A stretch of 64,000 nucleotides of DNA. Source: Macrostomum lignano. Lineage: Eukaryota. The stretch spans positions 274,441 to 338,440 of the forward strand of contig NIVC01000464.1 in assembly GCA_002269645.1 (NCBI GenBank), given 5' to 3'. A program made the position numbers and the translations under genes. The notes beneath the pieces are model-generated. The model did not search any database, was not told the origin of the DNA, and saw nothing but the letters and a program-made list of their open reading frames with translations. Below are positions 13,481 through 64,000 of the stretch, piece by piece; position 1 is the stretch's first letter, and each line of letters opens with the position of its first letter.

Positions 13481-13625
13481 TTTACTGAGATTCCAAGGTT
13501 CCCTGCAGTTTGAACAATTTATTTACCTAATATTCATGCTGCCCGAATCGCACGGACAGACAAGAGATCAGTCGCACAGTCAGTAATTAGTTCAGCATTA
13601 ACTCAGCAGCTTCAGTCAGCTAATC

Positions 13626-34604: not shown

Positions 34605-35660
34605 CCCGGCATCCAAATCAGATGCTTACTGTATGCTCATTAAGCGACGAAGAACAATGAAATTACACTAAAACATGTATCATCGCGGCGTGTATGCAGG
34701 AAAAAAAGAATTTTCCAAATCGCTTCAGTAGAAGCTGAGTAAAATGCAATTTTCCAATCCTTATGGGAATTCCAATGTGTTACCCGGCTTCCAAATCAGA
34801 TGCTTACTGTATGCTTATTAAGCGACGAAGAACAATGAAATTACACTAAAACATGTATCATCGCGGCGTGTATGCAGGAAAAAAAGAATTTTCCAAATCG
34901 CTTCAGTAGAAGCTGAGTAAAATGCAATTTTCCAATCCTTATGGGAATTCCAATGTGTTACCCGGCTTCCAAATCAGATGCTTACTGTATGCTTATTAAG
35001 CGACGAAGAACAATGAAATTACACTAAAACATGTATCATCGCGGCGTGTATGCAGGAAAAAAAGAATTTTCCAAATCGCTTCAGTAGAAGCTGAGTAAAA
35101 TGCAATTTTCCAATCCTTATGGGAATTCCAATGTGTTACCCGGCTTCCAAATCAGATGCTTACTGTATGCTTATTAAGCGACGAAGAACAATGAAATTAC
35201 ACTAAAACATGTATCATCGCGGCGTGTATGCAGGAAAAAAAGAATTTTCCAAATCGCTTCAGTAGAAGCTGAGTAAAATGCAATTTTCCAATCCTTATGG
35301 GAATTCCAATGTGTTACCCGGCTTCCAAATCAGATGCTTACTGTATGCTTATTAAGCGACGAAGAACAATGAAATTACACTAAAACATGTATCATCGCGG
35401 CGTGTATGCAGGAAAAAAAGAATTTTCCAAATCGCTTCAGTAGAAGCTGAGTAAAATGCAATTTTCCAATCCTTATGGGAATTCCAATGTGTTACCCGGC
35501 TTCCAAATCAGATGCTTACTGTATGCTTATTAAGCGACGAAGAACAATGAAATTACACTAAAACATGTATCATCGCGGCGTGTATGCAGGAAAAAAAGAA
35601 TTTTCCAAATCGCTTTAGTAGAAGCTGAGTAAAATGCAATTTTCCGATCCTTACGGGAAT
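34605..35660. repeat. Tandem array, 178-bp unit, ~5.9 near-identical copies
   Basis: CCAAATCAGATGCTTAC recurs at 34613, 34791, 34969, 35147, 35325 and 35503. Confidence 0.97.
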
Positions 35661-37121
35661 TTGTATGTTTAAATAATAAACTTACGTTGAATACAATTTA
35701 TTGCAAACGAACTCTACAAAATGCACGTTGTCAAGAGTAACGAAAGTGATAAACAAATAAAACCTTAAAATAATGTTAAATATGTTGTAGAATTATAGAG
35801 TGTAACATTATAAGATAGTTAAAGTTAATAAAATACATTATTATAGCTTTTCAATCATTTTCATTAGACTCATTTTAGGTCGTAATTAAACTTACCGTTT
35901 TAACAAATCATTTTATTAAAAATAAAGCTATACGAAAATAATTTGTGCTTTAATAGACTTTTTAACGTTTTAAAAACTTGAATAAATTTATTTTATAGCT
36001 TTATTGCTTTCAAATTGCCAAAAAACGAATTTTCATAAAACTTGCCCCCGATTTTTGGATTTCCCCATCTACTAGTAAAAAAGTAGAGTCTAGATTGTCC
36101 AGCCAAGCTGCAGACTGAGAGGTAAGGTGTCAAAGGCCCAGAGGCAGAGCCTATGGCCTATAAGTAAATGAGAAAAATATCAATCAAAGTGGTGCAGCGC
36201 ACCTGGCCCCAGTGGAGTCTCCCACAAGGTGGGCTGAGCAGCAGGTCAGCAAGCAGGGACCCGGTGTGGCAGCCCTGTGCATAGGCTTGCCAGCAATGGC
36301 CAATTAATATCTAGCATTGCCTCTGCAAAGTATAACCTAGAGCTAAGGGCAATATGTAGGTCCAGGCTACTAGCTTAGCATTGTTCACATGCTTAAAGAA
36401 CTGGATACCCAAGGCATTGCATAGGAGGTAACAATAATAGGCCTCTAAGCTCGCCTCACAGCTAGGGTCTGGATTATGTAATAGTGTACACTGGAACAAA
36501 AATCCTATCTAAGCTAAATATATGCCAACATATGCCAAAACAAAAAATTTCCCTAAAATGTATGCCAAAAGTTCTTCCTAAAAAGGTTATTTGGTTTTCA
36601 CAAGTAGAGTTTTCTAAGAAAGGCTCTTGTACGAATAGTCTTAAAATTTAAATATTACAAATATTTTCATTTTAAACAAACTTAAATTAAACCTACAAAA
36701 AATCATGCAAAATTTACATTCTTAGCAATCATTTACACTAGTTTTATTTATTGTTAATTCTAAAAAAGCAAAAAGTTTTTCACTGACTTTCTAGGGCGCA
36801 TGACCAAGACCGCCACATACCAAGACCGCCACAGCTCTTACTGACTATTGGAATTGAGGGGAAGTTACCAATCTTCTAGCATTGCTATTGGTTATGATGG
36901 GTTGTGGAGTTAGATGAGGAGGAGGTGTCCCAAGATTGGTCACTAATAAGATGAATAAGTGGCCCAAAATGATTTTAAGCCAACTAGGGCAATTTTAACA
37001 ATTCAAATTAAATGAAAAAACAAGGAGCCTGGCTCACTCACCTACCTGGCCAGGCTGGCCTGCTCACTAGTTCCTCTCTCGTGGCTTTGTCTTGTTGGCT
37101 CTCCCCATCTCACCCCTCATC

Positions 37122-40100
37122 GGCACGTTTATGACAGATTTCTCCAAAAATGACGACAAAATGTGTCATGAAGTCATTTTTTGGTACTGATGTCATTTTT
37201 TATGTGTCATGAAAAATGACAAACGTCCTTTTTACAAATTAATCTGAAAAAATGAAGCGCTTTTTCACCGGCTAAGTATTACTGAAGTTTCAAAACTAGT
37301 AGTATGATATTAAAGGAGTTATTAGGGCATGAAAATATGACGGGAACAAACAAAAAATACGGGTGATTGCACATACGTAAAAAATGACAATTATATGACA
37401 CACCTTCCGGCTTGAAAACAGTTTACTATAGTATACCAAATTTTTCAGTATTTTTGTTTAAAAAACATTGTAGATGCATAGGTGCATAGTAGTTATACAG
37501 ATAACTCAATAAAAAGTATTTTGTAGATAAAAAATAGTATATATTTCTTTGAACGAAAAATTGCATGTATTTATTTTAAATATAGTTAGCTTTGTCGTTG
37601 TAGAACACACGATAGATAGATAAAAAGTGCACCTGCTGTAAACCTATTGTATTGAAGATGCGCATCTACATTCTTTTAATTTGTACTTCATTTATTCTTA
37701 TTATATACTAAAAAAGATAGCCCTAATACGAAATATTTTAATGTAATCTTGTTCTAACTCGTCCATAAATATGAATAATGCCATGAAGCAGCACTCAATA
37801 TCAATAGACAAGTGGCATATAATAAGAAAAACCTGAATCTTCCTATCACTTTATCGCACATTGTGGTTCATGTTCTAAAAATTATTTGTGCATGAGCTAT
37901 GTATATGTAGTCATATAATAGTGAATTGAATTGAAGTTGTTAAGTAGTCAAATTTTTTATGCATTGATTTATTTTGTTTAGTTCAATTTAATACTTATAC
38001 TTATATATTTAAATATTGATTTTATTAAATCTTAACTTAGTTCAATGGTAATAAGTGTGTTACCTATAACCTTTAAATAGATAGAATTGTCTAATGATAA
38101 CTAAATAATAAAATGAATAATTTTATAATAAATGGTTTTTGTTATAAAATTACTATACCATTATATTCTCATAACATATACTATTATTCAATTACTTATT
38201 TCTATGAACTTCTTGTGGCAGGCTTATTTATGTATTAGATATTTCTATTTTAGTGAATAAGAAGTTAATAAATATGTATAAGCCTATTTATAAAGCAAGT
38301 TGATATTCAAAGTGCTTGTAGTAAATATCTAATAACTATTTATTAATAGCAATAGCTATGACATTTGGAATATAAAAAAAAATAAATTAAGAAGCTTAAG
38401 AAAAATCCAACTTAATTGTGTAGCTAGCAAAGAAAAAGTTAATTATTAACTTAGATTAGGTATATTTAAAGAATTATTTATTAACTTATTATTTATTATT
38501 TAATTATTAACTTATTTCAATAATAATCTGATTAGAAAATTTGACTTTTAATAGGACCTAGGAGGCCAAGATAGTCTAAGTATAAAAAGCCTAAAGATTT
38601 AATCTAGAATTTAGAATTTCATTTTGGGAAGTAGTCCAAGTCTGGGGTACAAACAAGAGATACCAATTTTTTAAGCTAGGGTATAGATTTAAAGGTAACA
38701 AATCAAGCTTAAGGGCATAAAAATTTGTATAAGGGGCAAAATAAGTCTAAAAGGTATAATAAACTTAGGTTTATAGAGGGTATAAAATGTTTTATTAAGC
38801 CATTTTAAGGGAGATGGCCACCCCCCACCCTTTAATTGAACCCTGGAATATAACAGCTATATTTAAATATAGGCTAACAAATAAAAGTTATACTTATCTA
38901 TAAAAAAATAACAATATAAAAAAACAATACTCTATACAATTTTTTTAAGCAAAGCCAAGTCCTAGATACAATATAACTATATTTATAGGTATATAAATAA
39001 AAAGGGCCTTTTATATAAGTAAATAGTAAATATCTTAGTACAAATGGCATTGCACAATAATGTAGAATAACTATATCAAACAATATTGAAAATTACTGCT
39101 ATATTTTGGGTTTTGTCACTATTAAATTTGAGCTTTGCATTGAAAAACACTTGCAATTTCCAGGTGCAATGGCTAAAGGCTAAAAAACTTCTGCAGAGCC
39201 ACTAGCAGGTCTGACTTATCTGAGTTCCTGCAGAAAATGGAGCTGCCTTCAGAGCCTCTAGAAAATGGAGTCTCTAGTTATAGTCTCTTACAACTACTCA
39301 CTGATACTTCTATAACAATGCATGAAATGGAAGAATTATTTCTGCAAGGTGAATTAATTAATCCAGCTCAGTCATCTGGCCATCTGGCAGATAAATTCAA
39401 CAGCCAGGACCTGCATGTTGAAGGAACAGAAGGAGTGCATGTTGAAGGAAGGTTTTACTTGCAGTAGCATTTATGTACTATTCTGGCAGTCCTTTTTTGT
39501 AAAAGTTACAGTTGAACGAGCAGTAAAATATGACAAATGCACATTGTGCCAAAAATGACAGAAGATCTACTCCTCTATCTACACTATATGTTTTTGTTCC
39601 TCCTTTTTATCGGCTATTTCAAATGTAGGTTCTGATGTCCGTTGGTTTTACTTGCAGTAGCATTTAACTACTTTTCTGGCAGTCCTTTTTGTGTAAACAT
39701 GACTGCTGCACAAGCTGTAAAATATGACGATTGCACATTGTGCCAAAAATGACAGAAGACAGTCTTCTATTTACACTATATTATAGTTCCTCCTTTTTAT
39801 CGGCTATTTCAAATGTAGGTTCTGATGTCCGTTGGTTTTACTTGCAGTAGCATTTAACTACTTTTCTGGCAGTGCTCGCTGTGTAAAAATGACTGCTGCA
39901 CAAGCTGTAAAATATGACGATTGCACATTGTGCCAAAAATGACAGAAGACAGTCTTCTATTTACACTATATTATAGTTCCTCATTTTTATCGGCTATTTC
40001 AAATGTAGGTTCTGATGTCCGTTGGTTTTACTTGCAGTAGCATTTAACTACTTTTCTGGCAGTGCTTGCTGTGTAAAAATGACTGCTGCACAAGCTGTAA

Positions 40101-41162
40101 AATATGACGATTGCACATTGTGCCAAAAATGACAGAAGACAGTCTTCTATTTACACTATATTATAGTTCCTCCTTTTTATCGGCTATTTCAAATGTAGGT
40201 TCTGATGTCCGTTGGTTTTACTTGCAGTAGCATTTAACTACTTTTCTGGCAGTGCTTGCTGTGTAAAAATGACTGCTGCACAAGCTGTAAAATATGACGA
40301 TTGCACATTGTGCCAAAAATGACAGAAGACAGTCTTCTATTTACACTATATTATAGTTCCTCCTTTTTATCGGCTATTTCAAATGTAGGTTCTGATGTCC
40401 GTTGGTTTTACTTGCAGTAGCATTTAACTACTTTTCTGGCAGTGCTCGCTGTGTAAAAATGACTGCTGCACAAGCTGTAAAATATGACGATTGCACATTG
40501 TGCCAAAAATGACAGAAGACAGTGTATTACGTATTATAGCCTTAATTATGTACTTTTAATAAGTTTTATAATTTTATATTATAAAACGATTTAGTATATA
40601 ATTGTCATATTAGATGTGCTATGCTTGCAATCTCGTATATGAATAAACCATCTATGTTTGCAACATACAACTATTTGCATGTTCAACAAAATTCAAACTT
40701 AAAATGCTGCAACTCACTTTCTACTTTCTCTTCCACACAATCTACTTAACTGATTTTTACAATTTCTTTAGTAGTAGCTATACTACTTCTATTATAGACT
40801 AATTTAATGTGAATATAAGATCCCTGTTGTTTTATTACAGGGTAAAGTTTATTGTATAAATTGCTAAGTATTTACAGTCGTTAATTTTAGTCTAACAGTA
40901 TTTATCAGCACTGCACAAATGTCGTGCAGTTGTGCGCCAATACAGGCTTAAAGGATCGTACACTACGGAATACTGTACAGTATATTGTCAGAGAGGCTGG
41001 AAGTTTTACAAAAATCGAGCAATTTGGAAGTGTCATGAATTTGTCATTTTTGCAAAGTCTGTGTCATGGCCAAAACTTTGCGCGTTTCCATTGGGATACA
41101 CAGCGGTCATTTTTTGTTAAATGTGCCATGTCATTTTTTACAATTCTCGTCATAAACGTGCC
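37122..41162. mobile_element. ~4-kb non-autonomous DNA transposon (inner element)
   Basis: Perfect 14-bp TIR GGCACGTTTATGAC...GTCATAAACGTGCC. 6-bp TSD CTCATC at 37116-37121 and 41163-41168. Many subterminal AAATGAC/GTCATTT motifs. No intact transposase seen. Confidence 0.85.
39451..40522. repeat. Tandem array, 190-bp unit, ~5.6 copies, inside the inner transposon
   Basis: GGTTTTACTTGCAGTAGCATTT recurs at 39451, 39644, 39834, 40024, 40214 and 40404. Confidence 0.97.
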
Positions 41163-44533: not shown

Positions 44534-47500
44534 ATGAGCCGCTATCCGCGCTGGACAGGCCGCAATGCTGACTGCTATGCTTGGATTGGCCAGCCAGCCA
44601 GACTGACTGTTGCCAGACCCGAGCCAATAGTAGAAAGCAGACAGGCTGCTAATGAAAATCAACAGCCAGCAGATGCTGCCAATCTACAGGACTGCTACGT
44701 GATTGACAGGAGTGGCGCGTTCGAGTTAAGCACTGGGGCTGATGACTTTGTTCCCGCTAGGCTGCTGTTACACGCTGAGTTTCTCGCTGCACCAGCCAGT
44801 GATGAGGACCTTGCCGATGATGCTGATGAGCCTGAGGCAGCGAAACTCTTTGATCAGCTGCTCCATGGACTGCCCTGGCGGACATCTGCAGAAGAATTAA
44901 GGTGAATATTTGAGTCTAAGGCAGGGGTAGCAATCCGGCCCTCTGATGAGCTTAGATTCTTTATCTGGCACTTTTAGATAAAAATGTTTGCTAAAACCCT
45001 ACTCTAAGACAATTGACTGCCAACCTAGCCTTAAACAGTGTTGGGCATTAACACGTTAAATATTTAACTCTTTGTTGACGAAGTTAATTTTTTTAATCAA
45101 CTTTGCCCAACACTGTCCTTAACCCTAACCTAACCTACAATCCTGAACTGAACCTAAACCTAGCCTAAACCCCAAGCCTACCCGTAGCCTAAACCCTAAA
45201 CCTAACATTCAATCCTCAACTGAACCTAAACCTAGCCTAAACCCCAAGCCTACCCGTAGCCTAAACCCTAAACCTAACCTTCAATCCTCAACTGAACCTA
45301 AACCTAGCCTAAACCCCAAGCCTACCCGTAGCCTAAACCCTAAAACTAACCTTCAATCCTCAACTGAACCTAAACCTAGCCTAAACCCCAAGCCTACCCG
45401 TAGCCTAAACCCTAAACCTAACCTTCAATCCTCAACTGAACCTAGCCTAAACCCCAAGCCTACCCGTAGCCTAAACCCTAAACCTAACCTTCAATCCTCA
45501 ACTGAACCTAAACCTAGCCTAAACCCCAAGCCTACCCGTAGCCTAAACCCTAAACCTAACCTTTAATCCTCAACTGAACCTAGCCTAAACCCCAAGCCTA
45601 CCCGTAGCCTAAACCCTAAACCTAACCTTCAATCCTCAACTGAACCTAAACCTAGCTTAAACCCCAAGCCTACCCGTAGCCTAAACCCTAAACCTAACCT
45701 TTAATCCTCAACTGAACCTAGCCTAAACCCCAAGCCTACCCGTAGCCTAAACCCTAAACCTAACCTTCAATCCTCAACTGAACCTAAACCTAGCTTAAAC
45801 CCCAAGCCTACCCGTAGCCTAAACCCTAAACCTAATCTTCACCTCCAACCCTAAACCTAACCTAAAACTCTTAATTCTCTTTAAGCTTTTCAATTCCTGC
45901 AGTAGTATTTTTAAAATCTAATTTCAACAGCATGGGAAAGCGTCGACCGCAGGCGTGCCAGTTTGGCGAGCCGTTCGCTTCCCACCAACCTGCGGACTCG
46001 GCAAGCGTTAGCCGCGATTGGCCGCTGTCCGCCCTGCGTCAGCTGCGTCATCGGCTTGGCAATCGGCTTGGCATTGAGTTCAACTCGGTCGTCTGCCGGC
46101 TCTACCGGGACTGCCGCGACAGCTCTGATGATGTTGATGGCGGGGACTGTCCGAGTTTGGGCCGGCATCCCAGCATTGCCTGGCTAGTGCTGGGTCGGTG
46201 CGGCCTGCGGTTTCGTTTCACGCAGCGGCCTGGTCGCAGGTGAGCACTGTAATCACTCCCTAAGCAATATTACCTGAGCTCCTCTGATCACTCCCTAAGC
46301 CACATTCCCTGAGCCTCTGATCACTCCCTTAGCCTCTGATAACTCACTGAGCCTCTGATAACTCCCTGAGCCATATTCCCTGAATCTCTAATCACTCCCT
46401 GAGCCTCTGATCACTCCCTTAGCCTCTGATCACTCCCTGAGCCATACTCCCTTAGCCCCTGATCACTCCTTTAGCCTCTGATTCCCTGAGCCATATTCCC
46501 TGAATCTCTGATCACTCCCTGAGCCTCTGATCACTCCCTGAGCCATATTCCCTGAATCTCTAATCACTCCCTGAACCTCTGATCACTCCCTTAGCCTCTG
46601 ATCACTCCCTTAGCCTCTGATCACTCCCTGAACCATATTACCTGAATCTCTAATCACTCCCTGAGCCTCTGGTCACTCCCTGAGCCTCTGGTCACTCCCT
46701 GAGCCTCTGGTCACTCCCTGAGCCTCTGGTCACTCCCTGAGCTTCTGGTCACTCCCTGAGCCTCTGGTCACTCCCTGAGCCTCTGGTCACTCCCTGAGCC
46801 TCTGGTCACTCCCTGAGCCTCTGGTCACTCCCTGAGCCTCTGGTCACTCCCTGAGCCTCTGGTCACTCCCTGAGCCTCTGGTCACTCCCTGAGCCTCTGG
46901 TCACTCCCTGAGCCTCTGGTCACTCCCTGAGCCTCTGGTCACTCCCTGAGCCTCTGGTCACTCCCTGAGCCTCTGGTCACTCCCTGAGCCTCTGGTCACT
47001 CCCTGAGCCTCTGGTCACTCCCTGAGCCTCTGGTCACTCCCTGAGCCTCTGGTCACTCCCTGAGCCTCTGGTCACTACCTGAGCCTCTGGTCACTCCCTG
47101 AGCCTCTGGTCACTCCCTGAGCCTCTGGTCACTCCCTGAGCCATATTCCTCCTGAGTGATATCACTGCATGATCACTGAATTAACTTTATTTTAGCCAAT
47201 CCTCAATCTGCGCAAACTCTACCCGCACGCAACCGTGCAGGCTGCGCCACCCTCTATCGCCCGTTATCGACGTTCACCTGCCCCCTGGCGGACTTCTACT
47301 CGCTCGCGGCTCCCTGCTTCGCGACTGGCGCATCCAGCTGCCGCCGGACCCAACAAGGTCGCAGGCGTGCGCGGCTCTGCTGGCATTCCGTCTGGTTGTG
47401 TCGCGGCCCAGAGAGCGTCTCACTGTTGTGCCGGATCGCAGCCACCGATCGGCGCTGTCGGAGCGACACGGCTGCCTACCAGCCGAGATGTGGTTCACCC

Positions 47501-48868
47501 GGGCCGGGCTGGCCAAGCGCACTGTTGGCTCGGCAACTAAAGCTTTGTACGCTTGGGCCGACTGGCTTAGGCCTGGCGAAGGTTGCGAAGGCGTCACCTG
47601 CAAGACCGTGCACTTTTCGGCTGATGGCGGCGTCTGGCCTGATTGGATGGCTCGGCTGGCAGCCGCGGTGAGCAGCGTCACTGACAATGCCAGACAGGGC
47701 CTGCCCAGTTACTCCTATGTGGATGCGCTTCTCATGCAGCGGATTAATGACCACCTGCCGTGGCAGCCGAGTGAGATTGGCCCGTTTATGGCTGTAGTTG
47801 CCATGGGCAATGAGGAGGTGAGTCTGCCACTCACTCAAGTCAGTCAGCCAGTCAGTCAGTCAGTCAGTCAGTCAGTCAGTCAGTCAGTCAGTCAGTCAGT
47901 CAGTCAGTCAGTCAGTCAAGTCAGTCAGTCAGTCAGTCAGTCAGTCACTCAAGTCAGTCAGTCAGTCAGTCAGTCAGCCACTCACTCAAGTCAGTCAGTC
48001 AGTCAGTCAGCCACTCACTCAAGTCAGTCAGTCAGTCAGTCAGTCAGTCAGTCAGCCACTCACTCAAGTCAGTCAGTCAGCCACTCACTCAAGTCAGTCA
48101 GTCAGTCACTCAAGTCAGTCAGTCAGTCAGTCAGCCACTCACTCAAGTCAGTCAGTCAGTCAGTCAGTCAGTCAGTCAGTCAGTCAGTCAGTCAGTCAGT
48201 CACTCAAGTCAGTCAGTCAGTCAGTCAGTCAGTCAGTCACTCACTCAAGTCAGTCAGTCAGTCAGTCAGCCACTCACTCAAGTCAGTCAGTCAGTCAGTC
48301 AGTCAGCCACTCACTCAAGTCAGTCAGTCAGTCAGTCAGTCAGCCACTCAAGTCAGTCTCTGCCCCCATCCAGGTGCGCAGGCCCCTGGAGATGCGGCGC
48401 CGGGCCGAGTCCGATGCCGACAGCACGGCGGAGGTGCGCGGGCAGCTGCGCTCGGCCAGCGTTGTACTCGGCGCCGGCGACGTGTTGAACCTTCGGCACG
48501 GCTTCTTCCGCGACTGGCAGTTCCGCTTGCCGAGGCACCGTCAAGGCAGCGGCGGTCGCGGAGTGCTGTTCCTGCTGTTCCGGCTGTCGGCTCCAACGTC
48601 GGCGACAGCTCAGGCTGGTGACGCTGAAGCGGCTGGATTGCGGCAGACGCAGTCGAGCGTCAGGAGCAGCAGCGGTGTCACTCTGCGCACAGAGCCGGAG
48701 GCGTGTCCTCACCTGTGCAAGTGCTGCGCTCGCTGCTCTGAGGCTGTCAGCCTGCTGGATCTCGGCGGCAGCGGCAGGTACGCCGGCAGTGGATTGTCGT
48801 GTCCGCTGTGCTCAAAGGAGGCGGCCCGCTGTGTCAGACTGAGCTCAGCTGCTGCCGCTCTGGCCTGA
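44534..48868 (+). CDS. ALKBH3-derived protein with two tandem AlkB-fold domains lacking catalytic residues, plus a Cys-rich tail; ~582 aa; exons 44534-44901, 45931-46239, 47241-47817, 48374-48868
   Basis: VIDRSGAFELS (cf. ALKBH3 VIDREGVYEIS), LFDQLLHGLPW, FNSVVCRLYRD, PSLGRHPSIAWLVLG, LPPGGLLLARG...DWRIQLP...LAFR. The pattern then repeats (PDWMARL, GPFMAVVAMG, GDVLNL...DWQFRLP...LLFR). Three GT-AG introns join in frame. Confidence 0.8.
45036..45115. mobile_element. 80-bp mini hAT-like MITE
   Basis: 12-bp TIR CAGTGTTGGGCA...TGCCCAACACTG. Flanks GCCTTAAA / TCCTTAAC match at 6 of 8 positions. Confidence 0.6.
45120..45870. repeat. 72-bp (and 66-bp) minisatellite rich in CCTAAA/CCCTAA
   Basis: Unit TGAACCTAAACCTAGCCTAAACCCCAAGCCTACCCGTAGCCTAAACCCTAAACCTAACCTTCAATCCTCAAC, about 10 copies. 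Confidence 0.93.
46255..47145. repeat. 19-bp minisatellite (CCTCTGGTCACTCCCTGAG) with degenerate 5' copies
   Basis: Directly visible; fills intron 2 of the AlkB-like gene. Confidence 0.95.
47825..48357. repeat. (CAGT)n microsatellite filling intron 3 of the AlkB-like gene
   Basis: Directly visible. Confidence 0.97.
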
Positions 48869-51182: not shown

Positions 51183-51701
51183 ATGTTCTGCAGAAGTATC
51201 ATCAGCCGGACACTTTCGCACTGCCGCTATCGCCCGGCGCCCCTAGCAACCGTTGCTAGGCCAGGATCGTTGCAGCAGAGGCGATGCTACATGGTGCCAA
51301 TTGTAATTGAGCAGGACGGTAGAAATGAGCGAGCCTACGATGTGTACAGCAGATTGCTGAAGGACCGGATTGTGTGTCTGATGGGCCCTGTCAGTCAGGA
51401 GCTGTCCAATGCGGTGATTGCCCAGCTGCTGTTCCTGCAGTCTGACAGTCCAAAGTCCACCATACACGTGTACATCAACAGTCCCGGCGGCTCGGTCACT
51501 GCCGGCTTGGCTATCTACGATACTATGCAGTACGTTGCCAGCCCTGTGGCCACTTATTGCCTTGGCGAGGCCTGCAGCATGGGCTCGCTTCTGCTTCAAG
51601 CTGGCAGTCCAGGGAAACGGTTCGCTTTGCCTAACTCTCGTGTAATGATCCACCAGCCATTGGGATCGGCTGGCGGCCAGGCCACTGATATGCAAATTCA
51701 T
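51183..51701 (+). CDS. CLPP: Mitochondrial ClpP protease, exon 1 (173 codons); remainder presumably beyond the window
   Basis: Arg/Ser-rich presequence, [53 protein letters not shown] (catalytic Ser), MIHQP (catalytic His), then donor CAT|GTGAGC at 51702. Confidence 0.95.
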
Positions 51702-51812
51702 GTGAGCATTCGGGGCTGTAAAGCTACATCATATTTTCTACTCGAAGATATTTACGAGTAGTTGCAATAATCGCCTCTGACTTTCTATGAGCAGACCCAT
51801 TAAATTAGCATC

Positions 51813-54030
51813 TGATGTAACCGCCCTTGTCGCCTGTCCGCTCCGTAGAGAGACGAACGCATGACTAGAGGGGGCAATGACCGTAGGCTGCCTATGACCG
51901 GGCAATGACCTGACGGACCTCCAGCACCAGACTGTCCCGCCCACATGATTAGTAGCTTTGGTAGCGCTTCGTGACCAGAGGGCCAAGGACCCACATGGAC
52001 CCCACCTGTAGCCAAGGTGCAATAGTTGGTCACTCGGTCATAGTATGACCGAGTGGCTGCCACCACTCTATGTGACCTGGCGCACCTGGATCTTTCTACC
52101 AGACCTCTCGAGGCTAGAGCCCCGCCTGGATTGGTTACCAGGGGATTTAGGCTAACAGGGGAGACGCATGCAGCCGAGTACAGGGACTCTGCTTGGGGCA
52201 TGATCGGGAACTCTGGGCTCAATCCTGGAGGATTTCTCAGCAGGGGATCCTTTGTGGCTGTGAGCGAGGCTGACTTGCGACTTTGATTACTAAGAGTAGT
52301 ATGAGGCGAACATGTACTGTCTACAGTTTAGATTGCTCAGGGCGAAGGGACGCGTTAGCATGGGGGTGCAACCTTCCTACTGCCATTCTGTGCCAAGACT
52401 CGCTAATCCCTCTACTGCACGCACACGCGGCCCCGCAGCACGCCCTCACAGGCGGGCTTTGCACGGGGAGAGGCCATTAGCTTACCCAAACTTCCTTATG
52501 CTTTGCCACCCCGGGAGAAAGGCTTAGCAAGCCATGAGTGAAATGATGGTGAAAGATTGAATAATGATGAAGTTAGTTAATAGTTAATAATTAGGCCCTT
52601 AGGCAAATAAGCAGGCAATTAGGCGGCTTCACTATTGAGTAAAATACAGCAAAAGATACGGTATCACAATTGGCTCAGCTCTCTAATCAGACAATGGAAA
52701 ATAGGCAAACCCCGGATAAGCAAAGGCAATTAGAGCACAAATTAGTAGTAGGAACTTACCGGCAGCTGCACAGAGAGAGAGAGAGGCGGAGTGACCGAGG
52801 GCGGCTGTAGGCTGCAGTCAGGCAGACGGTGAAGCGGCGATGCGCTGGAGCGACGAGGCGCTGATGTAGATCAGGCGATGCTGATGATGCGGGGCGGTAT
52901 CAGACCGCTGGCCGATAGGCGAGCTCACTTGGGGAGCTAAGGATAACTTGGCGGTAACAGACCGCGGGCCGGCAGGGATTCGTCTTATAGACGAATGGGT
53001 CAGAACTCAATCTGACAGCAAGTCCAAAGAAGGACGAGGAGAGGAACAGAGATAAACTCAGTTGAGTATTCTCATGCCGAAATCGCTTCCTTTTATAGAC
53101 CTCACAGCCGCCTCCTCAAGGTCGTTACCATGGCTCCCTCTCTCTGATTGGCTGCCGGCAGAATGACGTCAGAATGAGTCATGATGAGAAGCACGAGACC
53201 GGCATAGCAACATGAGAAATCGGGAAATTGCGCAATCCGGAGGTGGGGTGGGGGGATAATTGGCGCAGCGGGTGGTCGCGAAAGTGTTGCGCAAGCAAAC
53301 ATTGAGAACAATAGGGCTGGGGTCGAGAACAAAGGAATTGGAAATCGGGGATAATTGGGGAAAACTGAGAACAATGGAAAAGTAAACATTGGAGAAAAGG
53401 TGATAATTAGGTGCGAAAACGAGAACAAAAGAAAGAGAAAACCGGAGAAAATGTGATAATTGGTGGGGGTCGAGAGAACAAAAGAAGCAAAAACGAGAAC
53501 AATAGAAGCGGAGGTGGGGTGGGTGTCACATGAGAAATTTGGGAAGGAGAACAATAGCGTGAGAAAAGGTTGCGCAAGAGAGGGGGATGAGTCATCGATG
53601 AGTCACCGAGGGGGAGAAGGGGTCACACGACTTGCGTCACCGTTTGGGAGTTTGAGAGGGGATGGGGAGACGGTGAGCACACAAAGTACTGTAAGTAGAC
53701 ACAGGGAAAGAGGGGACAGCGCAGGAAAAGAGTGCAGAGGGAGACAAAAAAAGGGAGGAGGTAGAGAAAGTACAGGAAGAATAGGGCGGGAACAGAAGAG
53801 ATAGGGTAGAGGGGGAGGTACAGAAAGGGGTAGGGGCTCCGGAAAGGCAGGTGTGGCGGCAGGAGAGACGGGACCAAGGCAGCAGGAGGGGTGCAGCAGA
53901 GCGGGAGTCTCCAGGCCCGGGCGGAGACCTGGCCGAGTCTCGACAGCTCTGTGCAGAGGGTGCACGGGATAGGAGGCACTTTCGAAAAAGTTCCCATGCC
54001 CTATCCCGCGACCAGAGCGTGGTTACATCA
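51813..54030 (-). repeat. 3' LTR (2218 bp)
   Basis: 10-bp inverted termini at 51813-51822 and 54021-54030, preceded on the minus strand by a purine-rich tract. Confidence 0.85.
53091..53181 (-). promoter_or_regulatory. LTR core promoter: TATA, CCAAT, CRE and AP-1 motifs
   Basis: Minus-strand TATAAAA (53097-53091), CCAATC (53151-53146), TGACGTCA (53164-53171), TGAGTCA (53175-53181). Confidence 0.65.
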
Positions 54031-54043
54031 CACCCCCACTGCC
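54031..54043 (-). promoter_or_regulatory. Polypurine-tract-like sequence
   Basis: GGCAGTGGGGGTG directly before the 3' LTR start TGATG. Confidence 0.6.
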
Positions 54044-55087
54044 TTTTGTGACGGAACTGGTTCCGTCATCATCACTGCCCAACATGGAACCACACAGACG
54101 GGAGCGGGACTCAACCGAACGTGAAATCACAGAATTAACAAACCGCGAGCGGGAATGGAAAAAGGCGATAAAATAGAGGGGATAGCAATAAATTCACAAA
54201 ACGAGATACATAGGTTGGAGTGCAATACAGAATTTCAAAAATTTCAACTGTTGCTGTGGCTAAAGTGGGAGGGGGGAAACACAGACAGCGCAATAGTAGG
54301 GAGAAAAATAGCGAATTGTCAACAATAAATTATCATAATTGGATAGAAGCGCAGCTGGGAAAGAGAGGAAACGGGGAAGGGTGAGGGAAGTGGGGAAAAA
54401 GAAGGGGGGAAGGGTTGCTAGCACACAGCCAAGGGCAGAGCCTCGGGAGAATGACATTACACAGGGGAAAAATACTAATGCAGCGCAGTAAATTAATAAG
54501 CTAATTTCGCCGGGAGTTCAACCGCACGGAGGCCTAGCGTCCTTGAAGGCTCGGACCCCGCTTCAGCCAGTCAGAGGGCTTCGGGGCGATCGGTTGTAGG
54601 CTGGGAGGCGCCGCGCCGTGCGCTGGCCACTGTATAAAAGGCGCCACTGATAACGGGAGCCGGCTGCCTGCAACCTACACGGAGTCGCAGTTTCCAACCA
54701 AGGCACTCAGCGCGATTTTCCAAACTATACAACTACTCGGTAAGTCCCATCACCAACCTGATTTCCTTTCGCCTATACGTTAAACGAAATCTACCCACTC
54801 GCCATGCCTTTCGTTTTAAACTGAGCCAATTGCAGTAATAATATATGGCCTTTCTTACGGTAAAAGTAGTGAGCAGCCAACACAGAGCCATTTTTAGGAA
54901 TTTTTAGAATAATGACACAACAATGACTCGTATATTGGTTATTAAAGTTTAAAAATGAATATTATGGAAGAACCGAATATTAATAGGATAATTTCACACA
55001 CACACACACGACAAACACACAACGCAAGGGGGCGGAAAGGCGGGTCGGACCGGCCGGCGGACGTCGCTCAGCAGGCAGTCAGCATCC

Positions 55088-56437
55088 TTACTCGAAATGG
55101 GCCTCTTGATTTAGCTGGTACGGGCCATATGCCGCCACCTGAGCCATGGCACTTGCCCATGCTTCCACATAACGTTGGGCTGCCGCGGCCGTGAGCACCA
55201 CTCGGTGCCATCGGCTAGGCAAGATGTCGTTGCGCAGCACGCCCCTCAACTGCGGCAGAGTCGGGATGCCCAGGGCTTGGCATTGGACGACGAAGGCCGC
55301 ATTCCGTACTTGTTGCAGCCGTGTCAGAGTTGGTGCAGACAGGGGCGGCTGCGCGATTGCAAAATGCTGCAAAGTGCCACGGGGCACCTCGGCCAGGCCC
55401 GCGTAGCCGGGCTCAACGTCGCCCAGGGCCGCCAACACCCACCCACAGCGGCGATTGAACCGTTGCGAGAGAGTGGCGGCCCAGGCCACTGTGGCAAACG
55501 GCGCATAGAGGAGGGGCGCAGAGGCCGGCGCGGAGGCCGCAAGAATGCCGTCGTGGATGACGAGAGCCTCTTCCCATTCGGCGCCCTCGCTCAGGAAGCC
55601 CCAGAGCAGCCCTGGCAGGTCCGCAGGAAGCATGCCCCAGCGGCTGGCCAAGCTGGCCAGGCCAATCAATAGCCGGGCTCTCTGGGTTGGTGTCAGTTGT
55701 CTAGTCATCTGAGAGGAGGCTGCGCAGCTGATGATCACCTTCTTGTAGACCGGCCGATCGCAGGTGCTGAAGATTGCTGTGATGGGGGCACAGGACGGCG
55801 GCCGGGCTGTCAGGTGTGATGGTTCCTCATCCACAACCTTGCGGAGGAACTTGGCGGCCTGCCGGACTAGGTCGCCGAGGGCGTATTTGTAGGCGCTCTG
55901 GGCCGCTGCCTCGATGTACATTAACAGCGTATTGTCAACCAATCCCAGCAGGGCCGCTTTTGACAGGATGAGCAGACAGGGCCGGTCCAGGTTGTCGCGA
56001 AGTTGGCGCTCTAGAGTCGCATGCCTGTCCTCGGCCTGGAGTGGGCCATGATAGGACTCAGGCCCGACCCAGTGCACCAGATCCATAGCTGTCGCCGAAG
56101 GTTCGCCAGCCACCTGACCCCAATCGACTTCTTCTCTTTGCAGGGCGATGTCCACACTTCGGCGGCTGTTGGGCAGAACATCACGCAGGCGGCGGGCCGC
56201 CTCGCCGAATTCGGCCGCCAGGTCCGAAATGTCCGCGGTGTCGCCCCCAGCATTGGCCGGGTCGATTGTCTCGTCACCTTCTTCGACCCTGGCGGAGGCC
56301 GCCGCTGGCGGCTCGGGGCCGTCCTCCGCCTCTTGGATGGCGTCACGGGGCCGCTTTCGGCTAACTGGGCTGGCAGGACGCTCAGACGGTAAGCTGGAGC
56401 ATAGCTGAATTCGATTGATGGTAGGCTTCGTGTCCAT
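55088..56437 (-). CDS. Retrotransposon-borne ORF of unknown function (449 aa), possible NLS (RKRPR)
   Basis: Uninterrupted GC-rich ORF, co-oriented with gag, between the protease and the 3' LTR. Acceptor TATCCAG| lies 6 nt before the ATG. No signal peptide or clear transmembrane segment. Confidence 0.75.
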   Translation of the reverse strand: MDTKPTINRIQLCSSLPSERPASPVSRKRPRDAIQEAEDGPEPPAAASARVEEGDETIDPANAGGDTADISDLAAEFGEAARRLRDVLPNSRRSVDIALQREEVDWGQVAGEPSATAMDLVHWVGPESYHGPLQAEDRHATLERQLRDNLDRPCLLILSKAALLGLVDNTLLMYIEAAAQSAYKYALGDLVRQAAKFLRKVVDEEPSHLTARPPSCAPITAIFSTCDRPVYKKVIISCAASSQMTRQLTPTQRARLLIGLASLASRWGMLPADLPGLLWGFLSEGAEWEEALVIHDGILAASAPASAPLLYAPFATVAWAATLSQRFNRRCGWVLAALGDVEPGYAGLAEVPRGTLQHFAIAQPPLSAPTLTRLQQVRNAAFVVQCQALGIPTLPQLRGVLRNDILPSRWHRVVLTAAAAQRYVEAWASAMAQVAAYGPYQLNQEAHFE

Positions 56438-56980: not shown

Positions 56981-57350
56981 ACTGCCACCAGTTTGATGTA
57001 CTATTATAAAAGAGAAAGGGGAACCTACCACCATCTTGGCGCATTACCAAAGAAAAGAAAAGGAGGATCAGCCACCATTTTGAGAGAGGTTGCTAGGGAA
57101 AACTGCCACCAATTGTACATTAACAGGGAAGAGAAAGAGGGAACCCGTCACCAATTAGAGTGGATTGCCCGGGGAAACTGCCACTATTTGCCCTTCTACC
57201 AGAGGAGAGGAAGACGAAAAACTGCCATCCTTAGAGGTGTATCATTAAAAGAAGGCGGGGAAGAAGGCTACCACTACTTGATCACCTAGAGCTCAAGGGA
57301 AGGAGAGGGAATGAAGAAAGGAAGAAACCCCCAGGAAGGCCACTACCACA
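56981..57350 (-). repeat. Array of 8-9 degenerate LTR-end/PBS-like units (33-46 bp; the last is longer)
   Basis: Plus-strand (A/C)CTGCCACCA-like 10-mers at 56981, 57024, 57068, 57102, 57144, 57177, 57221, ~57267 and ~57342. Each is preceded by a purine tract and followed by 1-3 nt and TG/TA. Confidence 0.75.
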
Positions 57351-58432: not shown

Positions 58433-60376
58433 TCAGCGGGGGTCGAATGGGAGACTCACACCTAGCAAGTAAACCTTTTCTGTTCGATAGTCTATGATAG
58501 CATGCGTACTGGCTAGAAAAGCACTACCCAGGAGGGAAACTGCTGCTGAATTGCCAACGACCAGAAAGAGGATTCTCACCTCTTCTAGCCCAATAACTGC
58601 TGTGAGGGTGGCCTGGCCTAGCATCTCTAATTCATTGCCCGTGTAGGACACGGCCTTCACACATGGGGGCTCCAGGGCCTCCACACTCTGTCCGGTAATT
58701 TTAGTAAAGTCTTTGACTGTTAGCAAAGACAGCGCACTGCCCCATCTACCAGGAGGCGGGTGGGAACATTCTCAATTGGCAACTCTACAACAATATCTCT
58801 CCCGCGTTGTCCTCTAGCTGGTCTTGGCTGATAGAAATCGGGTACCTTCTCAAATCTAAACTTCTTGCTGGGCGGACGTGGCAGGTTAAGCTGGGCCCTA
58901 GAGAGGGAACGGGGCTGAGTTCGGGCCGGGCCATTCAGCCCTCCCACGGGTTTCCCGAACCCGGGGCTCTTCAGGCGTGGAAGGAGGAGGCATCAGAGCT
59001 TGCGCGCGCAGCTGGGCGAGCCTCTCCTGCCTCTCCCTGGTAGCCTCGTCTAACATATCTCTGCCCCACTCCTCTAAATCTTGCCTATGGCGATCAGGTG
59101 GCGCACGAAGCTGCAATTGCTGCTGCTGCACACCCGGCGCCGGCGGCGTGGGCGCCTCCTGAATTGCAAGCGGCGGGGGCTGGGGTTGGCGCCAGTTCCT
59201 ACTGCTATTAGAGCCGCCCTGCCCCTGCCTCCAGTTCCTGTTGGGAGTGGCGGGGCGAGGGGGCCTCATCTGCTGGGGCAGCTGGGCAACAGACTCTGCT
59301 GTCGCCTTCATAGTTTCATTGAGCTGCACCAGCTGGTTGCGCAGATCCTTTTGCGTTTGCTCTAGCGCGCCCAACCTCTCTTGCATCTCTGATAGGCCGT
59401 CACCGTCCTCCTCCGTCTCGTCAGCTTCCTGGTTCACCATCCTGACCCACTTGCGAGGGGGCCTGGGTGGCTGCTGAGGTTGCAGACGGACTTCGGTGCG
59501 GGACTCAGACCTGGGCGGGCCACTACTGTCCCATTTCCCGGCTAAGTCTGCGGCTTCTAACAGGGCTTGCTGCTGTTCTAACACCTGCTCAATTGTCTGC
59601 CAGCGACGGCTCAACAGATCTTGTCTGACCTGGCGGGGGAGCTTAGCGTGTTCCAAGTAGGTGTACACGATTTCTTGTTCTCTCTGCTCACCCTGAATCT
59701 GAGGAAACATGGCCGTTATCTGAGATCTTATCATAGCAGCAAAAGCACTATGTGATTGGCCGGGTTTCTGGCTCAGATTCTTCAGCTTATTTCTCTTAGC
59801 CAGATCAGTGTTGGCCTCGCCCAACTGCTCTCCTAATCTAGATACGAACTGCTCAAAGGGCAATTGCCCGTCCAATCCTAAGGCTAAGTTCTGAAATTCA
59901 CCTGGGAGGTGCGAGATGAGCACCTGCTTCCTAGCCTGATCTCCTACAGTTCTCTCCGCGTCCAGCTTGTAGATCATTCTCTCTACCCATTGCACAAAAC
60001 AGTGTTCGCCGGGAGAGAACTTTCTACGTAGATTTTCGGCCTCTGGGCGTCTTGGCCCATGTTTAGCTGGTTAAACGCATTGGCTATAGCGGCAACTAAG
60101 TCTCCTAGCTGCGGGACTGCCTGAGGAGGATTCTGGGCTGCGTCCGGGGAGCAGCGGCGGCTGCTGCGCCACCCTGATTGGGAGCGGGAGCTGCTACTCC
60201 TTCATCTGGTTCCTCAACTACTACTGCTTCTGGAGGCTGAGGGACCTGGTTACCAGCGGCTGCGGCCATTGCGGCTGCGGGGGCGGCAACTGCTGGGGTG
60301 TCAGCGGCCGAGGGTGGTTGACCAGGGGCGTCTGCGCACACAGCTTCTACGACCCTATCTCCACGCGCCGTGACAT
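58433..60376 (-). CDS. gag: gag-protease polyprotein of the LTR element (several single-base frameshifts as assembled)
   Basis: ORFs 60105..60572, 58898..59995 (helical capsid-like region, LKNLSQKPGQSH..F), 58720..58947 and 58433..58726 (LLVD-GGSALSLL...LLGSAFL, retropepsin-like). Stop TGA at 58433 with no RT after it. Confidence 0.7.
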
Positions 60377-62726
60377 GTGAATGCCGGATAGCTGGGGGAG
60401 TACCCACTACCGGGAAGGAAAAGAAAAGAAAACCGGGGCAACTACAGGTAAAGACCGAAAAGTTGATCCGAAACACACAAACACACTCACACAACACAAA
60501 CACAGACAAAACCACACACTTGCGGCGTCGAAGAAAACAAATTGAAAAACGGGTGGCTCCACATAATTCCATTTAGGCAGTCCTAACGGCTTCACTCGGC
60601 AAAGCACACTGACTCAAACTGCGGCTACCACTACCAGTTGTCTATGGCACATCCTGACAGGGAAAAATTGGCTATTCAGAGAGACTTGACCTTCATTTTG
60701 CGGCCATGCTAGGGAACCCAAATGCCGACCGTAAACGGACTTACGGCACCTGTACAAATTCTCCCCTAGGGTTGCGCGCCGGACCCCATTTCCTTAAGAA
60801 AGCTACTACGAAGAAGCGTTGGCGCCTGGACCCAAAAACCCAAGTGGCGGGAGCAATCCCCATGGAGGTCCTCCCACTTTACTGCCCTTGCACAGCCGGA
60901 AAACCGTCGGAGTCCAGTGGGGCTTCCACCTCAGGACTACCAATCTTGTACACGCAGCTTCACAAAAGGCGGGAATCCAGCTCCCCTACGTCTAGCAGAA
61001 TCCACAAAAACCAAGACCTCCCCCTTCTGTTCAGAGCGAAGGCGCGCAGCGGGAGTCCAGACTAAACTGTCCCCGAAGTTTTCAGGTTAGGCGGATTACA
61101 AGCCTGAAACTCTCGCCCGCTTTCCTAGGATAAACAGACCTAAGTGAGTATCTTCCTGAAATGCTTGCCCCTCCGATACTCCACCTTTGCTGCAGCTCGA
61201 AATAGCATACTTGGGACCTTTATCTGATGGCGGAGAAAGTCCTACAGTTGTCAGCCTCTCCACTTTACTGTACTTGAACGCCCGGTTCTACCAGGAGACA
61301 GCGGTACCTCCATCTAGGTTATTCCAAGTTGCCAGAGACGTCAACCCGTCTTATTGACCTTGCGGGGCACTGGGGTGGCACTCTATGTACCGGGGCTTTA
61401 CATTAGGGGACTGCATGCAACCCTGCGTCTAAGCGCTTAGTGGGCTGCAGTGGCCAGAGGGGAAAAGAGTTGCGCAATAGCGCCTTCCTGGGCCAGGCTG
61501 ACAAGTCGGGCAGGAGCGCCGTTCTACCGGGTCGGGCTGATTGGCACACCCACCTCCCCTATCAGACTGACAGCAGGGGGGAGGAATTACTAAAGGAGGA
61601 GAATGCAGCAGGAAACATTACGAGATCACTGGGGGCCACCAGACTTCCAGTACACCATTCCAATACTCACTGAACTCCACTATCAATAGGATACTATGGG
61701 ATCTACTATTTCCAGCCACTGCACCAGCCCAAATGCAACCAAAGCAGTTACTACCGGGTCTGCAATACAGTGGGGAGAGTCAGCAGACACGTTGGGATCG
61801 AATCCCAGCCATGAAGGCACCAGGGGTTACCGCAGAATTCAGGTCCGGGCTGATCGCAGGTATTCCATAGGAGGTGACACTTTTTTTAGCCCGAGATTTT
61901 TGAGTCACACTGATACCCTACAGAGATACAATCACACCGCTATTCCCATTCCTGCGAGACTTTGGTATCCCCCAATGTTTCCAAGGCCATGACTACTGCT
62001 TCCCTTACTATGCATATATAGCGAGTTCCCCATAGCCCTTGATAGCTGTTCATTCTAATGGACAAACAAAACACGCTCCGGTCTCTACGCATTTCTAGGA
62101 TTAACTGAGCGATCAGGGAGAGCGACTGTTACACTCCCCCGAGTAAAAGAAAGAGGTAGGACAAAGGAAAGAAATGCTTCGCTTCCAGCTTCCCTGTGCT
62201 TGCGTGATGAGGCTTCCGTACCTGGCTGGCTGTCCACCTCAACACTCACACAGTTCTGCTGTAGGCTAGGCGAGAGAAAGAAAGGGAGGGGAAATAAAGC
62301 ATATTACCATGAAATAGAAAGTGAGTCCGGAAAATTCACTTTCGCAGTTCTTCACACACTCCGTTACCAGGTAGCTATTCTGATTGTAATCAAATCCGCT
62401 CGTCTACCACTTCACACTTTCTAGCGCTGAAACTGATCGGCTAAATTAATTTTAAATTGAATCAGGGGCTTTTGGCGAATGAATGAATTTGGAAATTTCG
62501 AATGAATTGAACGAATTCGCAGCCCGAAAAATTTGAAAAGTTACATTAATATTTTTGGATTTTGTTGCCTCACGCCATGGGAGAAGAGAATGACGATTGG
62601 CGATTTTTACGATTGGTAGATTTAGACATGGCACTCTTTGCGCTTCGGCCACCATTCTGAGGGATGCCACAGGTGCGCTTGTCACATCTAAACCACCAGT
62701 CCGAAACTCAGCGCTGTTTGCACCAG

Positions 62727-62744
62727 ATCCCACCGCTGCCACCA
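62727..62744 (-). promoter_or_regulatory. Primer-binding site, tRNA-Leu
   Basis: TGGTGGCAGCGGTGGGAT is complementary to the known tRNA-Leu(AAG/TAG) 3' end ATCCCACCGCTGCCACCA. Confidence 0.9.
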
Positions 62745-62747
62745 TTT

Positions 62748-64000
62748 TGATGTAACCGCCCTTGTCGCCTGTCCGCTCCGTAGAGAGACGAACGCATGAC
62801 TAGAGGGGGCAATGACCGTAGGCTGCCTATGACCGGCAATGACCTGACGGACCTCCAGCACCAGACTGTCCCGCCCACATGATTAGTAGCTTTGGTAGCG
62901 CTTCGTGACCAGAGGGCCAAGGACCCACATGGACCCCACCTGTAGCCAAGGTGCAATAGTTGGTCACTCGGTCATAGTATGACCGAGTGGCTGCCACCAC
63001 TCTATGTGACCTGGCGCACCTGGATCTTTCTACCAGACCTCTCGAGGCTAGAGCCCCGCCTGGATTGGTTACCAGGGGATTTAGGCTAACAGGGGAGACG
63101 CATGCAGCCGAGTACAGGGACTCTGCTTGGGGCATGATCGGGAACTCTGGGCTCAATCCTGGAGGATTTCTCAGCAGGGGATCCTTTGTGGCTGTGAGCG
63201 AGGCTGACTTGCGACTTTGATTACTAAGAGTAGTATGAGGCGAACATGTACTGTCTACAGTTTAGATTGCTCAGGGCGAAGGGACGCGTTAGCATGGGGT
63301 TGCAACCTTCCTACTGCCATTCTGTGCCAAGACTCGCTAATCCCTCTACTGCACGCACACGCGGCCCGCAGCACGCACTCACAGGCGGGCTTTGCACGGG
63401 GAGAGGCCATTAGCTTACCCAAACTTCCTTATGCTTTGCCACCCGGGAGAAAGGCTTAGCAAGCCATGAGTGAAATGATGGTGAAAGATTGAATAATGAT
63501 GAAGTTAGTTAATAGTTAATAATTAGGCCCTTAGGCAAATAAGCAGGCAATTAGGCGGCTTCACTATTGAGTAAAATACAGCAAAAGATACGGTATCACA
63601 ATTGGCTCAGCTCTCTAATCAGACAATGGAAAATAGGCAAACCCCGATAAGCAAAGGCAATTAGAGCACAAATTAGTAGAGGAACTTACCGGCAGCTGCC
63701 AGAGAGAGAGAGAGGCGCGAGTGACCGAGGGCGGCTGTAGGCTGCAGTCAGGCAGACGGTGAAGCGGCGATGCGCTGGAGCGACGAGGCGCTGATGTAGA
63801 TCAGGCGATGCTGATGATGCGGGCGGTATCAGACCGCTGGCCGATAGGCGAGCTCACTTGGGGAGCTAAGGATAACTTGGCGGTAACAGACCGCGGGCCG
63901 GCAGGGATTCGTCTTATAGACGAATGGGTCAGAACTCAATCTGACAGCAAGTCCAAAGAAGGACGAGGAGAGGAACAGAGATAAACTCAGTTGAGTATTC
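62748..64000 (-). repeat. 5' LTR (partial; continues past the window)
   Basis: Copy of 51813-53071. Ends ...TTACATCA, then AAA, then the PBS. Confidence 0.92.

Follow-up and report, generated by a model that had tools for sequence, protein, structure and literature searches.

What is a row of sequences resembling the junction between an LTR end and its PBS doing in the interior of an LTR element of the free-living flatworm Macrostomum lignano, kilobases from the junction itself? The window, by which we mean the whole 64,000-nt stretch analysed here, holds such a row on its minus strand. The original prediction had described a true PBS adjoining the LTR end and an internal array of junction-like units, an anatomy that proved correct. 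It had also proposed functions for the array, and had added that tandem duplication and decay might explain it. The array is real; the functional readings are unsupported, and those that make it a sponge for tRNA fragments or a memory of other elements are disfavoured.

The array's host is an LTR element of ~13 kb on the minus strand, with an internal part of ~8.7 kb. Its features, listed in its own reading direction, are as follows.

62748–64000, minus strand: 5′ LTR, partial, recognised as a direct repeat; ends ...GGTTACATCA at 62748, with its start beyond the window end
62727–62744, minus strand: true PBS TGGTGGCAGCGGTGGGAT, 3 nt (AAA) past the LTR end
62646–62698, minus strand: two leader PBS half-sites, TGGTGGTTT at 62698 and AGAA-TGGTGGCCG at 62654
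60105–60572, minus strand: ORF of 155 aa, Ala/Pro-rich, no family match
58898–59995, minus strand: ORF of 365 aa, all-helical, in the gag position and Gag-like by position only
56982–57350, minus strand: array of nine head-to-tail units, situated between the 365-aa and 449-aa ORFs; sense strand non-coding
55088–56437, minus strand: ORF of 449 aa, near-orphan, no Pfam family
54033–54047, minus strand: polypurine tract (PPT) AAAAGGCAGTGGGGG, directly upstream of the 3′ LTR, its position inferred from the inverted termini
51813–54032, minus strand: 3′ LTR, ~2.2 kb, recognised from the direct repeat and the termini

The long direct terminal repeats (51813–53071 and 62748–64000) are 99.2% identical, the right copy being cut by the window end. 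The termini have the TG...CA form and make a short inverted repeat, with TGATGTAACC at 54030–54021 and GGTTACATCA at 51822–51813; ahead of the downstream LTR copy stands AAAAGGCAGTGGGGG(TG), and the copy opens with TGATGTAACC, which is the LTR end in inverted complement. The upstream boundary of the 3′ LTR is placed by these inverted termini, the matching part of the 5′ LTR lying outside the window. A TATAAAA box is found in the 3′ LTR at 53097–53091. The real U5/PBS junction reads GGTTACATCA-AAA-TGGTGGCAGCGGTGGGAT at 62757–62727 on the minus strand, and its PBS is the exact reverse complement (18/18) of ATCCCACCGCTGCCACCA, the published 18-nt 3′ fragment of human tRNA-Leu-AAG, which served as the pairing reference in place of the flatworm's own tRNA-Leu. 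The energy calculated for the duplex of PBS and tRNA-Leu 18-mer is −39.4 kcal/mol. Judged by sequence features, the direct repeats, inverted TG...CA termini, PBS and PPT together identify an LTR retrotransposon. Directly after the true PBS, the leader carries its TGGTGG half-sites 46 and 44 nt apart, which is the spacing of the array's long units; compared unit to unit, these leader segments score no higher than the null.

Several other properties of the termini and leader were observed. On the sense strand, U3 (53100–54000, minus) is strongly pyrimidine-rich and includes a 53-nt tandem repeat at 53350–53465 with recurring CCAATTATC boxes. An exact TGGTGGCAG occurs in each LTR copy (62991–62999 and 52057–52065, minus), ~250 nt before the LTR end, in the context ...ATAGAG-TGGTGGCAG-CCACTCGG. 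The PPT region GGCAGTGGGGGTG (54033–54047, minus) resembles the PBS segment GGCAGCGGTGGGAT (62727–62744, minus) and is the element's third-best duplex partner of the tRNA-Leu 3′ 18-mer (−22.5 kcal/mol). Three PBS/leader segments have an AGCGC box in common, a hint that the PBS region may have been triplicated long ago, with a similarity that lies within the null.

The element had been described as a pol-less one on the minus strand, and this stands: on ORFs of at least 100 aa, Pfam detected no reverse transcriptase (RT), RNase H, integrase or protease. The element also lacks env. No element ORF of at least 100 aa matched any Pfam family, and tblastn gave no match between the element and the gypsy-type RT of this window. 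That RT lies at 961–2644 (minus, 68% GC, RVT_1 E = 5e-34) in overlapping frames cut by the window start, and is probably the frameshifted pol of another LTR element. A candidate protease remnant after the gag-like ORF (LLVDGA...LLGSAFL...IDY) was rejected, Pfam being blank even at E = 1. The AlphaFold model of the 365-aa ORF is helical and of low confidence (pLDDT 53.5). Homology searches found no word-sharing homologue for the 365-aa or the 449-aa ORF, and an exhaustive profile search among 1.84 billion representatives returned three weak relatives only for the latter. Two of these are on Logan contigs (L002 and L003; SRR31628392 / SRR31628394), with 38–42% identity to the C-terminal half; by these sequence matches the 449-aa ORF family is present outside the M. 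lignano genome. Both contigs are 1–2 kb long and do not extend to an array. Further copies of the element's own family were found neither by homology with both large ORFs nor by exact look-up of four ORFs, one of which was tried with two alternative start codons.

A scan for the junction pattern returned one contig from metagenomes and none from viral contigs. The metagenome contig (Ga0157628_1041473, 535–562; hereafter L001) carries an LTR and gag, with the same TACATCA terminus and the 18-nt tRNA-Leu PBS; its junction reads ...CCTACATCA-AAT followed by the identical 18-mer, and the element is otherwise unrelated. This finding suggests a wider group of elements with a common integrase end and primer, perhaps including a helper lineage.

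The element itself sits, on the evidence of the flanking coding sequence, antisense within an intron of the M. lignano ClpP gene. A ClpP protease exon occupies 51183–51761 on the plus strand (Pfam CLP_protease, E = 2e-56), matches the M. lignano ClpP in UniRef (238 aa, mitochondrial-type) at 100% identity and ends ...MQIH followed by GTGAGC; one or more further ClpP exons must be outside the window. Elsewhere in the window are XRN exoribonuclease exons and a dynamin fragment. The M. lignano genome is full of minisatellites, and the window holds at least nine minisatellite or satellite arrays besides the one discussed here. Among the window's repeats are a 54-bp minisatellite at 26824–27743, just upstream of a dynamin-like exon whose ORF reads through it; two AT-rich satellites in a region of ~30% GC, one at 34597–35661 (178 bp, 6 copies, 99% identity) and one at 39451–40523 (190 bp, 5.6 copies, 96% identity); a 72-bp interstitial repeat at 45117–45841 with 138- and 210-bp higher orders, made largely of the telomere-like motifs CCCTAAA/CCTAAA; and an (AGTC)n-based repeat at 47838–48358 that is translated as SVSQ repeats within a 407-aa ORF. 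A 33-bp minisatellite at 12760–13481 was considered as kin of the junction-like array and rejected, the one 12-mer that they have in common being a chance match.

The array has stops in all three sense frames. Each of its units opens with a 9-mer like TGGTGGCAG, mostly after C/T-A plus 1–3 bases, and the units are named below by position, from the 5′-most to the 3′-most on the element's sense strand.

57345, minus strand: unit with 9-mer TAGTGGCCT
57276, minus strand: unit with 9-mer TAGTGGTAG
57230, minus strand: unit with 9-mer GGATGGCAG
57186, minus strand: unit with 9-mer TAGTGGCAG
57153, minus strand: unit with 9-mer TGGTGACGG
57111, minus strand: unit with 9-mer TGGTGGCAG
57077, minus strand: unit with 9-mer TGGTGGCTG
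57033, minus strand: unit with 9-mer TGGTGGTAG
56990, minus strand: unit with 9-mer TGGTGGCAG

All eight units listed in the original prediction are present on the minus strand, letter for letter, and the one at 57345 is a ninth, weaker unit. The spacing noticed ahead of the motif was also borne out, with CA plus 2–3 nt in 6/8 of the listed units and TA plus 1–2 nt in the other two. Unit lengths range from 33 to 69 nt; long units (42–46 nt) and short ones (33–34 nt) partly alternate, giving a higher order of ~77 nt. Divergence among the units is too great for Tandem Repeats Finder, which missed the array even at a score of 30, and Rfam returned nothing relevant.

Each unit had also been said to be followed by a pyrimidine tract, which holds for eight of the nine (14–19 of the next 20 nt) and fails for unit 56990 (11/20). 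The further reading of these tracts as PPT-like is unsupported: they are pyrimidine-rich in the element's sense direction, the opposite of what a PPT requires. A tract of this kind raises another idea, that the units are serial 3′ splice acceptors or spliced-leader (SL) trans-splice acceptors which would give the 449-aa ORF a separate mRNA, the first AG after the pyrimidine tract being the CAG of TGGTGGCAG. M. lignano uses SL trans-splicing, the array sits between the two ORFs, and each unit offers a pyrimidine tract and then ...CAG, in several cases with no earlier AG. The tract, however, ends ~20 nt ahead of the AG, which is a non-canonical layout, and 545 nt that include upstream ATGs separate the last CAG from the ORF start; we regard acceptors as very unlikely.

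The array's best match anywhere, in the whole window and on both strands, is the element's own U5/PBS junction. Unit 56990 agrees with the true junction TACATCAAAATGGTGGCAG (62754–62736) at 18/19 positions and unit 57077 agrees with TCAAAATGGTGGC at 13/13, so that the two units together rebuild the exact 19-mer. A rough arithmetic estimate puts the chance that 8.7 kb contains a 19-mer match with no more than one mismatch at ~2e-6, and by that estimate the likeness of the units to the junction cannot be chance. In a sliding alignment over 128 kb (both strands), ~27 loci score at least 10 against the 20-nt junction, and 5 of them lie inside 57205–56990. The number of matches drops steadily from the 3′-most to the 5′-most unit, from 18/19 to 7/19. 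On its sense strand the element has 7 copies of the heptamer TGGTGGC where 1.0 is expected (0/300 shuffles reach 7), and on its antisense strand it has 0, the motif copies being related by duplication and not independent events; outside the array there are 4 copies against 1.0 expected, the true PBS counted in.

Further alignments also showed how narrow this likeness is. The first 9 nt of the PBS have 6–9 matches in the units, and the 3′ half of the PBS, CGGTGGGAT, is in none of them (0–4/9 matches). A functional PBS is ~18 nt long (at least 10–12 nt) and comes right after U5; no unit has this form, and the units are 5.4 kb from the LTR. The array's flanks have no similarity to the LTR or the leader, and the pyrimidine-rich unit bodies are not significantly like the U5 of the element or of L001 (p > 0.05 for all units). 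On these alignments, homology between array and junction is confined to ~19 nt. Two larger sources were considered. One, the U5/PBS end of a second, degraded LTR in a composite element, was rejected because of the dissimilar flanks; the other, derivation of the whole 43-nt unit from the U5 terminal segment of the element or of L001, is not supported, the p values being those just given and the alignment only suggestive.

Comparison of the units with one another indicates common descent. Whole-unit identity is 0.76 for 57186 and 57111, 0.74 for 57153 and 57033, and 0.70 for both 57276 and 57077 against 57033, values at the 95th–99th percentile or above of a null in which the motif is kept and everything else shuffled. 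The inter-motif sequences thus fall into related classes, as the original prediction had remarked, and the best pairs of these head-to-tail units have the whole-unit similarity above chance that defines a tandem repeat. Long units have ...TAATG(N)ACA...AA ahead of the motif in common. The 5′ parts, which had been taken for LTR ends, are alignable variants of one sequence, TAATGTACATCAAA, among them ...TAATGTACAAT, ...TAATGCGCCAAGA, ...TAATAGTACATCAAAC and ...TAATGATACACCTCTAA. Within the motif, TAG replaces TGG in three units and others have GGATGG or TGGTGA, changes that, going by predicted pairing, amount to decay that fails to maintain complementarity to the tRNA 3′ end. The 99.2% identity of the two LTRs dates the decay of the array to before this insertion and makes it a family trait.

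The 5′ parts also bear on the proposal of a CRISPR-like memory, in which the array would be a source of antisense RNA against the U5/PBS junctions of other LTR families. In its favour, these parts differ from unit to unit. They are, however, alignable variants of one sequence that vary together with the spacer classes, and in L001, the sole other family in which this PBS was found, the LTR also ends in TACATCA. The memory reading is contradicted by the descent of the 5′ parts from a single sequence, and we give it almost no credence.

We suggest, with a probability of roughly 0.55, that the element's own U5-end/PBS junction seeded a minisatellite, of which the array is the decayed remainder. 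Tandem duplication and decay, originally offered as a caveat, is the explanation best supported by the unit classes, the single sequence behind the 5′ parts and the gradient of junction matches. The alignments show that the ancestral unit, as reconstructed from them, held a ~19-nt copy, TACATCA-AAA-TGGTGGCAG, made up of 7 nt from the end of U5, the 3-nt spacer and 9 nt from the start of the PBS. This junction patch would have been carried by a short double RT template switch at the tRNA-occupied PBS into the non-coding stretch that separates the two large ORFs. There the patch and the adjoining pyrimidine-rich sequence would have been amplified as a unit of ~43 nt, and co-amplification of a 34-nt deletion derivative could have produced the ~77-nt higher-order repeat. 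Amplification could have come about by RT strand switching between direct repeats, by replication slippage or by unequal exchange, and the amplified units would then have drifted. The array would in that case be a probable by-product of reverse transcription and repeat dynamics, carried by a non-autonomous element, and any residual binding of tRNA 3′ ends would be weak at most.

Some observations would also be expected of a functional platform and would count against decay, namely the information in the motif, the sense-only TGGTGGC with the leader half-sites, and the openness of the RNA. In a motif-anchored alignment the 9-mer holds 1.43 bits/column against 0.37 and 0.58 in the flanks, a gap that the anchoring itself inflates. 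A motif better kept than its spacers is also what a cluster of sites for a putative sequence-specific protein would present, one that also recognises the U5/PBS junction and acts either on DNA, as an enhancer, silencer or insulator, or on RNA through a pyrimidine-tract binder. Nine degenerate short motifs at 33–46-bp spacing over ~370 bp, eight of them with a pyrimidine tract behind, are consistent with such a cluster, and some units may resemble a YY1-type core, AAnATGG. Against it, the ATGG core is in three units only, and the spacers are related by descent and not freely variable. From this comparison we consider a protein-site cluster unlikely.

The remaining functional readings depend on pairing with tRNA-Leu. 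The four 3′-most units can form 8–10 contiguous pairs with the tRNA-Leu end, including the 3′-terminal A76. Five of the nine units are mismatched in the first six positions, and three of these five place an A opposite C75, which would be predicted to prevent priming. The best duplex of a unit with the tRNA-Leu 18-mer reaches −18.8 kcal/mol, a value equalled or beaten by ~18 other sites in the element. The array RNA folds worse than 100/100 shuffles (z = +3.97) and is the least structured stretch of the element, with z from −2.8 to +2.1 in 21 other 400-nt element windows and +2.35 for the array's antisense strand. Open RNA with repeated complements of a tRNA 3′ end fits a docking platform and, equally, any pyrimidine-rich direct repeat.

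On such a platform, half-sites on open genomic RNA would bind the 3′-terminal 9–10 nt of tRNA-Leu, with the effect of a higher local primer supply, RNA bridging, or an edge over others in obtaining a helper's RT and nucleocapsid. The Ty3 PBS, at 8 nt and bipartite, is a precedent for short complementarity. For HIV-1 priming, 6 nt of PBS complementarity are reported to suffice given compensating contacts (PMC7472051). The geometry of the four contiguous units is compatible with priming, the RNA there is the element's least folded part, and the motif is confined to the sense strand with extra half-sites beside the true PBS. The modest duplex energy, matched at so many other sites, and the mismatches near the tRNA terminus speak against it. 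Multi-tRNA loading, one of the functions originally proposed, keeps its four well-paired units and loses the three with A opposite C75 and two more that are damaged; on predicted pairing we judge docking or priming unlikely. The fuller proposal, that the array is a selected cis-acting device in which an unstructured platform of PBS half-sites, each with a U5-end mimic, would serve for docking multiple tRNA-Leu 3′ ends or for internal priming, thereby aiding capture of a helper's RT machinery, appears to us quite unlikely.

The same pairing can be read as a decoy, with the array soaking up 3′ tRNA fragments (tRFs) that otherwise block the PBS. The units are indeed complementary to the last 9–10 nt of the tRNA-Leu 3′ fragment. 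A 3′-tRF target, however, requires seed pairing, which here means the PBS 3′ half that pairs with tRF nucleotides 1–9, and this half is absent from every unit. Both tRF classes are reported to be mismatch-sensitive, those of 22 nt requiring the seed and those of 18 nt being highly so (PMC7472051). With 0–4/9 matches in the seed-pairing half and an unexceptional binding energy, −18.8 kcal/mol against −39.4 for the PBS, the sponge that had been proposed is disfavoured and in our view highly improbable.

A transgenesis method exists for M. lignano (PMC5730564), so the question of what the array does is testable at the bench. If the array is a by-product only, it is a small, clean footprint, showing that RT can transfer into the interior of an element a patch whose centre is exactly the U5/PBS junction and that patches of this kind can seed minisatellites. 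If instead the motif proves conserved across copies, LTR elements would have in this array their first example of multi-copy docking for a primer tRNA, and a new route by which non-autonomous elements compete for helpers.

Among known systems, the Drosophila gypsy insulator has 12 Su(Hw) sites in its 5′ UTR. The likeness is one of layout only, with ~350 bp and about ten degenerate motif copies at 30–45-bp spacing inside an LTR retrotransposon; the gypsy sites are in the leader, whereas the units described here lie between ORFs and have spacers related by descent. As in LARD-like elements and in mouse ETn relative to MusD, the LTRs, PBS and PPT are kept while RT and IN are absent, and the PBS and LTR terminus are common to at least one other family (L001), as would be expected of an element mobilised in trans. 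The M. lignano element differs in retaining two long orphan ORFs, and its helper is putative. The bipartite PBS of Ty3, the Ty1 boxes and the HIV-1 PAS likewise present 6–10-nt complementarities to the primer tRNA outside the 18-nt PBS. Those extra sites pair with the T or D arms, once each, whereas here the complement of the same 3′-terminal 9 nt recurs as many as nine times at a distance of 5.4 kb from the PBS, many of the copies being damaged. In the literature we found no description of an internal repeat that copies its element's own PBS junction, nor of PBS-like arrays, and the paper on M. lignano LTR elements does not treat PBS or internal repeats. Tandem repeats within the non-coding regions of LTR retrotransposons are themselves a known phenomenon, for example in plant Ogre/Tat elements (PMC7004042), which resemble the present case in that short, degenerate units stand head to tail in an internal region that is untranslated, with classes related by duplication and as a feature of the family. 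What sets the M. lignano array apart is that its unit holds a copy of the element's own U5 end, spacer and PBS 5′ half, and that its host is a non-autonomous element of a flatworm.
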